DNA of 64,000 bases from Octopus sinensis. Its lineage: Eukaryota. The notes under the pieces were generated by a model. It did not search any database, was not told the origin of the DNA, and saw nothing but the letters and a program-made list of their open reading frames with translations. The position numbers were made by a program, and so were the translations under genes. Position 1 is the stretch's first letter, and each line of letters opens with the position of its first letter. Positions 5,818 through 8,130 of this stretch are shown here, piece by piece. Location of the stretch: the NCBI RefSeq assembly GCF_006345805.1, contig NC_042997.1, forward strand, positions 15,810,001-15,874,000, written 5' to 3'.

Positions 5818-8130
5818 ATGGCAACAGAAGCACAGAAACTTATTGCTCTTTCTCTCGGCAAAATTGCCGCCTCCCGTAATCAACGTGGTGGAATTAATCT
5901 TCACAAAAATCTGCTCGTGGCTAGTGTTTTACATAGAGCCAGGTCTGTGTATATGCTGGAAAACTACCAATCCTTTATCATGAACAAAAATCGTCAAATG
6001 GAACCCCATGTAAACACACCCCCTGTTCACAACAGTAAAGAACAATTACAACATTCCAATGTTGCGCCTAACCACGACTTAAATGGTTCTCTCACAACAA
6101 CAACAGCAACAGCAACAACAACCACTTCTATGGGTGGACCCAGTTTGGAGATGCCATCTTCGTGTGCTATGGAGCAGGAATCTGCTGCCTGTAGTATACC
6201 TAACAACAGTCCAATTGATTTTGGAAACAATGTTGATTCGAATACAGATGACTGTATGTTGTCTAGGAGTAATAAAACAGAAGACATTGAGGGAAGTGGG
6301 AAGATACCCACGGCTGTACTCGGTGTTGGTCATGAAGTGGTACCCTCATACACAAACTCTGTTCCAACAGCCAGCACTTCGTCGTTTTTGCCGGCGGGAA
6401 CAATAACAAATGCTGTCGTCTCATCTTGTACCAACAACAGTCGCAGTTATAATACCAGTCATACGACTAATAACCACATGATCTCCGGACCCTGTTCTAC
6501 AGTTCGTCATAAAAATGTTGATGTTTTTTCAACGCCCTCTGTGGACTATTCAATGGTCCATAATTCTTGTATGAATGACGACAAGGAGAACACACCTCCG
6601 TCTCAAAACATGGACTACGATTTAGAAAGTTTATGTAGCAGTGGGGCTAACAATACTGGTGTTAACATGGTGAACTCGTCAGTTATTCAACCTCACCACA
6701 TGCAATACCATCATCAACAACAACAACAGCAGCAGCAGCAGCAACATCATTCATCACTACTACACCACCACAGTCACCATCCGCATCCTCATCACCATTA
6801 TCACCCTCCTCCTCAACCTCTGCAGATGCAGGTCACAACGAGTAGTTGTTTCCTATACCCTGGGACAGATTCAACGGGTACTTATACGAACAGTAACCAC
6901 GCGACTGTATCTGGTGACAACAACCAGCAACAATCTTGTGCATTTAGTAGTAACAATAACAATGTACTCGTGCTTGGCTCTCAGGGCCAGACATTGTCTA
7001 AATCTGCCATCAAAAGAAAGCGACCTTCTTACGATTTACCAGACTCTGGTCAAACAATGATGATGCTAAATGGCTGCAATGGAAACAGGGGTATGGCTAC
7101 TGGACATAACAACCAGTTGGTTCCTTCGTTACCCACTTCTGTAAGTTCTACTTCACTTTCTTGCTCTTATTCTTCCGCCTTCAGTCCCGCCTGTCCGAAA
7201 AGAAGTCGGCTAACCGACTGCTTAGTACTGGCGGACCACAATAACAAATATGACACATTAAACACAGAACACGAGATGTCATCACAACCACAACAGCAAA
7301 TTCAACAACAGTTTCATCAACAACACCATCCCCACGTTAATAATAATAGCCATTCTCATCATCAAACACATCACCATCCTCAACAACAGCCAGTTGCAGA
7401 TAGCACGTCACAGATTAGTAACCTTGTGTCAATATTTCATTCGGGATTTTCTGGACTTTGTTCAACTGTTACTACCCCTATTACTCACGGCAACGGTAGT
7501 AGAGCGACGATGGAAAATGACCATCATCATAATCAACAACTACATCATGACCACGAACACGATCACCACCATCATAATCATCATCAACAGCAGCAGACCA
7601 AAGACAGTGGCGGTGGATATGATAGTGGGGGCAGTTTCGTGAGGGCCGCCACAGCCAGCACATGTACGACCAGCAGCAGCACCATCTCTAACAACAACAA
7701 CAACAATAACAATAGTAATAACGGCAGTTACTGTAGCAACAACAACCTGTCTCCTTCACAACATTTTACTACGAACACTACTAGCACGACTACTGCTACT
7801 AGTACGAACTCTACAGCTACTACCAACCAAGGCAACAACAACAGCCACGGGATAACAACGATTAGCAGCAGCACTCCTACCACTACAACAACATCTACTA
7901 CCACCACGACGACGTCGTCTACGACAAGTACAACATCCAGCAACAACAACAACAGCAACAGCAGCAGCAGCTGTAACTCGACGACGACAACAAACACTAC
8001 CAAAACAGCAGCAGCGTTGTCCAACAATCGGGTGGATAGCCTCTCATCGTCAGCGGCAGCTTGCAGCACCCAGGTGAAAGACAATAGAATTGAAGCTAGC
8101 CTGAGGACGGTCATTGCTTTGACAGTATGA
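5818..8130 (+). CDS. Intronless immediate early response (IER2/IER5/IER5L family) protein, 770 aa, expanded by low-complexity tracts
   Basis: N-terminus [42 protein letters not shown] resembles the IER family N-terminus (human IER2 begins MEVQKEAQRIMTLSVWKMYHSRMQRGGLRLHRSLQLSLVMRSAR). Internal [17 protein letters not shown] (7408-7458) matches the NLISIFGSSFSGLL motif. Basic patches KRKR (7012-7023) and PKRSR (7195-7209) are present, and the C-terminal LRTVIALTV resembles the family ending (R/T)A(I/V)VAF. A-rich start context AAAATGG; 2.3-kb uninterrupted ORF. Which vertebrate paralog it corresponds to cannot be assigned. Confidence 0.9.

Follow-up and report, generated by a model that had tools for sequence, protein, structure and literature searches.

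The 64-kb window of Octopus sinensis DNA analyzed here (NCBI RefSeq assembly GCF_006345805.1, contig NC_042997.1, forward-strand positions 15,810,001 to 15,874,000, numbered 1-64000 below) carries at 5818-8130 an intronless gene for a 770-residue protein that is almost certainly a member of the IER (IER2/IER5/IER5L) family. Upstream of it lies a compact promoter module that is also found at gastropod and bivalve IER loci. Taken as a whole, the evidence is best explained by an octopus IER ortholog with long linkers, a mechanism of the kind that engages the B55 subunit of protein phosphatase 2A (PP2A), and a conserved signal-responsive promoter module, a combination that we regard as probable. 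The gene is the octopus ortholog of the single molluscan IER gene and a co-ortholog of vertebrate IER2, IER5 and IER5L.

The open reading frame (ORF) runs from an ATG in good Kozak context (AACAAAATGG) to a TGA stop and is by far the longest of the window, where the other ORFs of at least 130 aa are translations of simple repeats or microsatellites. Its protein exactly matches that of the gene on GCA_006345805.1, record CM016859.1. An octopus meta-transcriptome contig (L003, from SRR3401912) is collinear with positions 5543-8625, which indicates transcription and the absence of introns across that span. A single-exon coding sequence is also present in O. bimaculoides, three bivalves, Lottia, Capitella and Lamellibrachia, and an intronless structure is ancestral for the IER family. 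Among three octopus sequences dN/dS is 0.135-0.16 overall, with zero amino-acid changes at residues 1-57 and 751-770. We regard it as shown that the gene is transcribed, lacks introns and evolves under purifying selection. An ORF artefact, be it a frame left open by chance in low-complexity DNA or a processed retrocopy that is no longer functional, might be suspected of a gene that is intronless, encodes 53% S/T/N/Q/H and bears the NCBI name 'uncharacterized'. Against such an artefact stand the probability of a 770-codon frame staying open by chance anywhere in the window at this base composition (~1e-16), a dN/dS of ~0.15, indels that are in-frame without exception, the RNA support, the ancestral nature of the intronless structure, synteny with O. 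bimaculoides, and the conserved promoter. We consider the chance of an artefact negligible; dN/dS, indels, RNA and synteny rule out both the spurious ORF and the retropseudogene.

The coding sequence and the recognizable parts of its product are these:

5818-8130, + strand: intronless IER-family coding sequence, 770 aa plus stop (uninterrupted ORF, RNA contig, dN/dS)
5818-5988, + strand: N-terminal IER domain, residues 1-57, a predicted PP2A-B55-binding helix-loop-helix (Pfam, chain 8uo5_D, contact residues)
7012-7023, + strand: basic patch 1, KRKR, residues 399-402, a putative half of a nuclear localization signal (NLS) that aligns with KRRR of relatives
7198-7209, + strand: basic patch 2, KRSR, residues 461-464, the other putative NLS half, 58 aa after patch 1
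7411-7461, + strand: motif 3, of the NLVSIF..FSGL type, residues 532-548, with 77-89% identity to oyster and gastropod proteins
8095-8127, + strand: C-terminal helix and ...VIALTV-COOH end, residues 760-770 (predicted helix 760-769), invariant in octopuses

The family assignment, first proposed in a preliminary description made from the sequence alone, holds well: the full protein scores 81.3 bits with Pfam PF05760 (IER), where the cutoff is 22.6, and residues 2-57 by themselves reach 78.1 bits. Residues 1-61, searched exhaustively with HMMER, recovered 444 representative clusters and settled the family. Other searches were weaker, with 8 matches for a word-based search of the full-length protein, which was swamped by low-complexity words, 2 for a 60-aa N-terminal query, and mostly short fragments for an N-terminal profile. 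NCBIfam gave zero matches, as expected for a eukaryotic protein, and no Pfam domain beyond PF05760 was found in the protein. That description had also pointed to the engagement of PP2A-B55 by the IER5 N-terminus, and residues 3-46 of the octopus protein align without gaps (E=3e-9) to the IER5-N50 chain of the PP2A/B55α cryo-EM structure (8uo5_D). With the B55 interface residues taken from the structure paper and their numbering cross-checked (bioRxiv 10.1101/2023.08.29.555174), 10 of the 14 B55α contacts are identical in octopus and a further 3 are conservative. The four positions at which mutation abolishes binding are all kept, with I10 replaced conservatively by L and S14, K17 and L30 identical. 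Judged from this correspondence, it is quite likely that the N-terminal domain binds PP2A-B55.

The four motifs that had been named as characteristic of the family, the N-terminal domain among them, are present in family order and recur nearly verbatim in the oyster, scallop and snail orthologs. Motif 3 is the sole high-scoring segment pair outside the N-terminal domain in comparison with family representatives, and a terminus reading IALTV, IALAV or LAMSV is common to molluscs and annelids. In relatives the first basic patch, KRRR, is followed 11-19 aa on by KKxK/R, with a single relative at 41 aa. AlphaFold2, run on the full length with a 9-sequence alignment, predicts only three helices, at 4-17, 27-59 and 760-769.

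Set beside its closest known counterparts, the octopus protein resembles human IER5 and IER5L in the gap-free alignment of the ~50-residue N-domain, with 13/14 B55 contacts identical or conservative, and in having a remainder that is predicted to be disordered with basic patches, an intronless coding sequence and a PF05760 match. Unlike human IER5, it carries motif 3 and the ...IALTV end, which it has in common with other molluscs. Human IER5 and IER5L are ~330-400 aa long, against 770 aa in octopus. Among named molluscan orthologs we compared those of Saccostrea cucullata (XP_062570987.1) and Ylistrum balloti (XP_060064246.1), both called IER5-like, and of Saccostrea echinata (XP_061164744.1), called IER2 protein-like. 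The Saccostrea and Ylistrum proteins show ~70% identity to octopus in the N-terminal domain, end in IALTV, and have a single-exon coding sequence behind the same upstream promoter module; in motif 3 the Saccostrea proteins are 78-83% identical. They differ in size (312-352 aa vs 770), in the spacing of the basic patches (14 aa vs 58) and in their linkers, which are 2.8-5.7x shorter.

The length difference lies in the segments between the motifs, which we measured against 27 relatives that keep all four:

Linker L1, N-domain to basic patch 1: octopus 341 aa; relatives median 120, maximum 152; 2.8x
Linker L2, basic patch 1 to 2: octopus 58 aa; relatives median 14, maximum 41; 4x
Linker L3, basic patch 2 to motif 3: octopus 71 aa; relatives median 40, maximum 81
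Linker L4, motif 3 to C-terminus: octopus 216 aa; relatives median 38, maximum 82; 5.7x
Total protein: octopus 770 aa; relatives median 304, maximum 375

These figures agree with the preliminary description, which had put the protein at two to three times the length of vertebrate IER proteins (the 27 relatives range from 231 to 375 aa); the longest among the other 147 best family representatives has 476 aa. Three further statements of that description stand in part. It had called the protein mostly polyQ, polyH, polyT, polyN or polyS, and it is indeed mostly low-complexity and predicted to be disordered, with S, T, N, Q and H making up 53% of residues, low-entropy segments holding 43%, and pLDDT (the AlphaFold2 per-residue confidence) below 50 at 699/770 positions, but homopolymer runs of at least 3 cover only 16%. 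Growth through coding trinucleotide repeats, its second statement, is supported by the 2.8-5.7x length of L1, L2 and L4, by imperfect triplet and hexamer arrays (ACA, CAACAG, AAC, CAG) that Tandem Repeats Finder reports beneath the runs, and by the position of the indels, all 12 of 12 sites being in-frame and inside T/Q/N/H/A runs in the three octopus sequences. This restriction to homopolymer runs fits a length that is at present changing by slippage of triplet repeats in the coding sequence, but much of L1 (e.g., residues 58-290) has no repeat-like character, and triplet expansion therefore accounts for only part of the growth. As to the label 'cephalopod-type', the long linkers are present in three Octopus sequences, but searches recovered no squid, cuttlefish or nautilus sequence.

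Linkers of this extent raise the question of whether the IER domain has been kept and the long Q/H/T/N/S linkers have gained a new main function, for example as a transcriptional co-regulator or condensate scaffold, with control of PP2A-B55 reduced to a lesser role. They account for more than 85% of the protein and yet evolve under purifying selection: dN/dS at residues 58-770 is 0.14-0.16 among the three octopus sequences, from which it follows that the low-complexity part is likewise constrained. No similarity to the octopus linkers was found in any family representative, and they have split the NLS halves by 58 aa. Q- and H-rich tracts are, moreover, common in transcription regulators. What speaks against such a gain is that all four family modules are conserved, B55 contact residues included, that zero additional Pfam domains are present, and that AlphaFold shows no structure in the linkers. 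A newly gained main function seems improbable to us, and we return to the IER protein with a B55-type mechanism as the preferred explanation.

The second carrier of that explanation is the upstream region, in which the following elements were recognized:

5095-5312, + strand: conserved promoter module of ~220 bp, common to gastropod and bivalve IER loci
5117-5129, + strand: block CTACCATGACAAC, counterpart of ATGACGAC (ATF/cAMP response element (CRE) half-site-like) in other molluscs
5144-5154, + strand: CArG-like 11-mer CCTTTATTTGG (CC-W7-GG), identical in octopus, Lottia, Ylistrum and a third bivalve (locus L006), 10/11 in Saccostrea
5158-5162, + strand: inverted CCAAT box no. 1 (ATTGG), from a motif scan
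5169-5178, + strand: CTATAAATAG, which fits the MEF2 consensus YTA(W)4TAR and a TATA box, from a motif scan
5229-5233, + strand: inverted CCAAT box no. 2 (ATTGG), an invariant column block in the alignment
5245-5249, + strand: CRE half-site TGACG, with TGACG at the same position in Lottia
5283-5287, + strand: inverted CCAAT box no. 3, within a GATTGG that is invariant in 6/6 aligned sequences
5304-5311, + strand: full palindromic CRE TGACGTCA, single copy in 64 kb where 0.83 is expected

An nhmmer profile built with octopus left out, from Lottia, Saccostrea, Ylistrum and the third bivalve only, finds one match in the 64-kb octopus window, at 5095-5312 on the + strand (E=6.6e-12, model positions 17-215), and likewise one match in the O. 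bimaculoides locus (E=6.2e-12). Copies of the module lie at 9274-9491 in the O. bimaculoides locus (L001), 2606-2831 in the Lottia locus (L007), 3641-3866 in L004, 3633-3861 in L005 and 3634-3846 in L006. In an alignment of six sequences (A4) the string ATGAC.AC is invariant, octopus having TGACA where the other molluscs have TGACG. The 11-mer CCTTTATTTGG is found nowhere else in the window, even with 1 mismatch allowed. A scan of 4000-5817 for canonical SRE (serum response element)/CArG, AP-1, EGR, NF-kB, heat-shock element and ETS sites found none. At the position of CTATAAATAG the other molluscs have CTATTATTAG, TTATAAATAG, CTATTTTTAG and CTATTAATAG. The CRE TGACGTCA also ends the Lottia module; Saccostrea and Ylistrum have ACGTCA there and L006 has TGACGTTG. 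The elements keep the same order in Saccostrea, Ylistrum, the third bivalve and Lottia, in all of which a perfect AP-1 site precedes them. Between O. sinensis and O. bimaculoides, positions 5079-5316 are 98.7% identical, and the whole of 5079-5817 (739 bp) is 98.1% identical, compared with 92.2% at four-fold sites (p=1.5e-12). The distance from module to ATG is 507-723 bp in octopus and 150-360 bp in Saccostrea and Ylistrum. Of the further contigs considered, the only one of vertebrate type reaches 230 nt upstream of its ATG, and one that may come from another mollusc reaches 70 nt.

The module is a real conserved non-coding element common to three molluscan classes. Fragments of it are kept in annelids, with an ATTGG...TGACGTCA end and a canonical CArG box in Lamellibrachia and CTATTTTTAG and TGACGTCA in Capitella. 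It is tempting to speculate that the module is an ancient lophotrochozoan signal-response promoter with a fixed order of elements, which has driven IER since before the cephalopod, gastropod and bivalve lineages split; we offer this tentatively, as an idea with rather less than an even chance of being right. The full CRE, the CRE half-site and the MEF2 consensus are signal-responsive promoter elements, present here as motif matches, and the architecture looks like what would be expected of a signal-induced gene responding to cAMP, Ca2+ or MAPK. In mammals, pip92 (IER2) depends on a serum response element (SRE) (PMC516031), and clusters of CREB, MEF2 and SRF sites drive activity-dependent genes, as in the synaptic activity-responsive element (SARE) of Arc (PMC3561385). 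Like a SARE-type element, the octopus module is compact and strongly conserved, with CRE sites, a perfect MEF2 consensus and a CArG-like element. Unlike SARE, it is promoter-proximal instead of a distal enhancer and holds three NF-Y-type CCAAT boxes, and under a strict definition it falls outside the class, having only CC-W7-GG and no canonical CArG and with sites that span ~170 bp. The resemblance is one of functional analogy, not of membership.

Between the module and the gene, and downstream of the stop codon, the transcript and its signals are outlined by the following features:

5520-5526, + strand: candidate core-promoter TATA element TATTTAA, 23 nt upstream of the 5' end of contig L003
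5543-5817, + strand: RNA-supported 5' untranslated region (UTR), minimum extent (L003), 96-98.9% identical among the three octopus sequences
5561-5713, + strand: conserved upstream ORF (uORF) of 50 codons, beginning at one of three upstream ATGs that are conserved in all three octopus sequences
8131-8625, + strand: RNA-supported 3' UTR, minimum extent (L003 is collinear to 8625), poorly conserved
8953-8958, + strand: candidate poly(A) signal, the first AATAAA after the stop

Over 5317-5817, O. sinensis and O. bimaculoides agree at 96.5-98.9% of positions, and a third octopus shows 96% identity in the part with RNA support, with four-fold sites at 92.2%; behind this constraint could be control of translation, structure in the RNA or additional promoter elements. 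The start of an oyster contig (L012), 66 nt upstream of its ATG and 3' of the module, was set aside as a mark of the transcription start site, since the run it comes from may be of RNA or of DNA. On the 3' side, a run of N directly downstream of the O. bimaculoides ortholog (L001 ~12330-14040) blocks comparison of the 3' UTR, and the apparent 0% identity there is this assembly gap and not divergence.

Combining protein and promoter, we propose that the N-terminal hairpin would, by analogy with human IER5, dock on the top face of the PP2A B55 subunit and so block or redirect substrate recruitment, that the basic patches would bring the protein into the nucleus, and that the long low-complexity linkers would serve as flexible spacers. 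The compact module at 5095-5312, with its CArG-like, MEF2/TATA-type, three CCAAT, CRE half-site and full CRE elements, would drive transcription. For human IER5, N50 plus an NLS suffices for function (bioRxiv 10.1101/2023.08.29.555174).

Several observations weigh against this proposal. In the protein, octopus departs from human IER5 at contact K29, which in the human protein forms a salt bridge to B55 D116 (bioRxiv 10.1101/2023.08.29.555174) and which is N in octopus, as also in Lottia, Capitella and Lamellibrachia. The AlphaFold model of the isolated N-domain is one helix, 4-60, with no hairpin. The 58 aa between the octopus basic patches, another departure from human IER5, lie far past the spacing of a classical bipartite NLS. 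In the promoter, CCTTTATTTGG is not the canonical CC(A/T)6GG, its A/T core being 7 bp and not 6, which makes SRF binding doubtful; the AP-1 site that is perfect in the Saccostrea and Ylistrum modules and in the other molluscs is degenerate in octopus (TGACTAG); and some of the 'promoter' motifs could lie within a long 5' UTR. The 3' UTR shows no enrichment of AU-rich elements (AREs), with 2 ATTTA where 4.2 are expected and no UUAUUUAWW nonamer in 8131-9000, which is mild evidence against the mRNA instability of a classical immediate-early gene (IEG). The label 'immediate-early' itself would come from two sources, the name of the family and the syntax of the promoter. Neither the single-helix model of the N-domain nor the full-length model, whose pLDDT of 39 is too low, gives a basis for a meaningful fold search.

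Several of these points would also suit a genuine IER gene that is constitutive or developmental in its expression, with a promoter block that serves housekeeping or tissue-specific regulation by way of NF-Y and CREB. Besides the missing ARE enrichment, CCAAT and CRE elements are common in non-inducible promoters too. A canonical SRE is absent from 4000-5817, the transcript comes from a bulk meta-transcriptome of unstimulated material, and the octopus IEG literature that we found names egr1 and creb only. Against constitutive control stands that a CRE, a half-site, a MEF2-type and a CArG-like element, with AP-1 elsewhere, are packed within ~220 bp and have been kept for more than 500 Myr. The gene is, furthermore, short, intronless and TATA-containing, as is typical of IEGs, and vertebrate members of the family are inducible. 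Constitutive or developmental expression is, in our estimation, the less likely case, albeit one to be taken seriously, and the balance of sequence features tips slightly toward stimulus-induced transcription of the octopus IER gene.

The assignment of the gene to the family is not new in itself, since Pfam hits had already been computed, the O. vulgaris protein is IER5-like in UniRef, and bivalve proteins are named IER5-like or IER2-like. Our literature search for invertebrate or molluscan IER genes returned nothing specific to them. That such a gene may be overlooked, as had been suggested, is confirmed by names such as 'hypothetical predicted protein' and those in use at NCBI for the closest relatives:

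O. bimaculoides ortholog, XP_014778649.1: 762 aa, 96% identity, 'putative uncharacterized protein DDB_G0277255'
O. vulgaris, CAI9714894.1: 432-aa model, 'hypothetical' (NCBI), 'Immediate early response gene 5-like protein' (UniRef)
Saccostrea (bivalve): 312-313 aa, IER5-like / IER2-like
Ylistrum (bivalve): 352 aa, IER5-like
Candidula (gastropod): 432 aa, uncharacterized
Elysia (gastropod): 402 aa, hypothetical
Batillaria (gastropod): 337 aa, hypothetical
Arion (gastropod): 324 aa, uncharacterized

The O. vulgaris protein is identical as far as ...NGCNGNR (residue 423) and then diverges, which marks it as a truncated model; it stops short of basic patch 2, motif 3 and the C-terminus. In Lottia, Capitella and Lamellibrachia (L007, L008 and L009), the 49-53 aa models labelled 'partial' prove to be complete single-exon ORFs of 295, 235 and 256 aa, which share the C-terminus of the octopus protein. 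The gene is thus misnamed or truncated in present annotations, and this is simple to correct.

The surroundings of the IER gene are poor in genes and rich in repeats. The window aligns collinearly to the O. bimaculoides locus at ~85-88% identity, and within it 3700-4400 and 4800-5078 contain blocks of 94-97% identity among stretches of 66-85%, which may be distal regulatory elements. Besides the IER gene, the ORF listing, which is blind to spliced genes, gave no convincing protein-coding ORF in 1-64000, and scans of the window for Rfam families and tRNAs came back empty. Dispersed and tandem repeats of ~110-190 bp, probably SINE-like (short interspersed element) or satellite families, occur at 41271-41995, in four copies spaced by ~190 bp, and at many other sites, among them 23336-23745, 34031-35434, 47555-48332 and 53116-53767; they are 72-83% identical to O. 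bimaculoides L001 8749-8848, 20968-21142, 21201-21361 and 1572-1682. A microsatellite-rich tract of ~2 kb (45261-47349) gives rise to long artefactual 'SIYLSIYL' ORFs, and a run of N at ~490-590, an assembly gap, is read as X in ORF 386-1126.

As a protein, octopus IER belongs to a known family and is ordinary within it, and its extra length is a modest curiosity. A promoter block that is kept across three molluscan classes is unusual, and it offers a handle on the age of stimulus-response wiring. Cephalopod neuroscience has very few activity markers, and a short, intronless IER gene with a compact promoter offers itself as a practical candidate marker or reporter, the latter following SARE-based reporters and the approach taken with the cricket egr-B promoter. 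Should the module be the ancient signal-response promoter that we tentatively propose, it would be directly usable as a compact reporter of activity or stress in cephalopods, and it would rank among the very few non-coding elements that can be aligned across molluscan classes. The 2.5-fold growth of the linkers, the split NLS and the uORF-bearing 5' UTR would then represent octopus-lineage tuning of a frozen regulatory unit.

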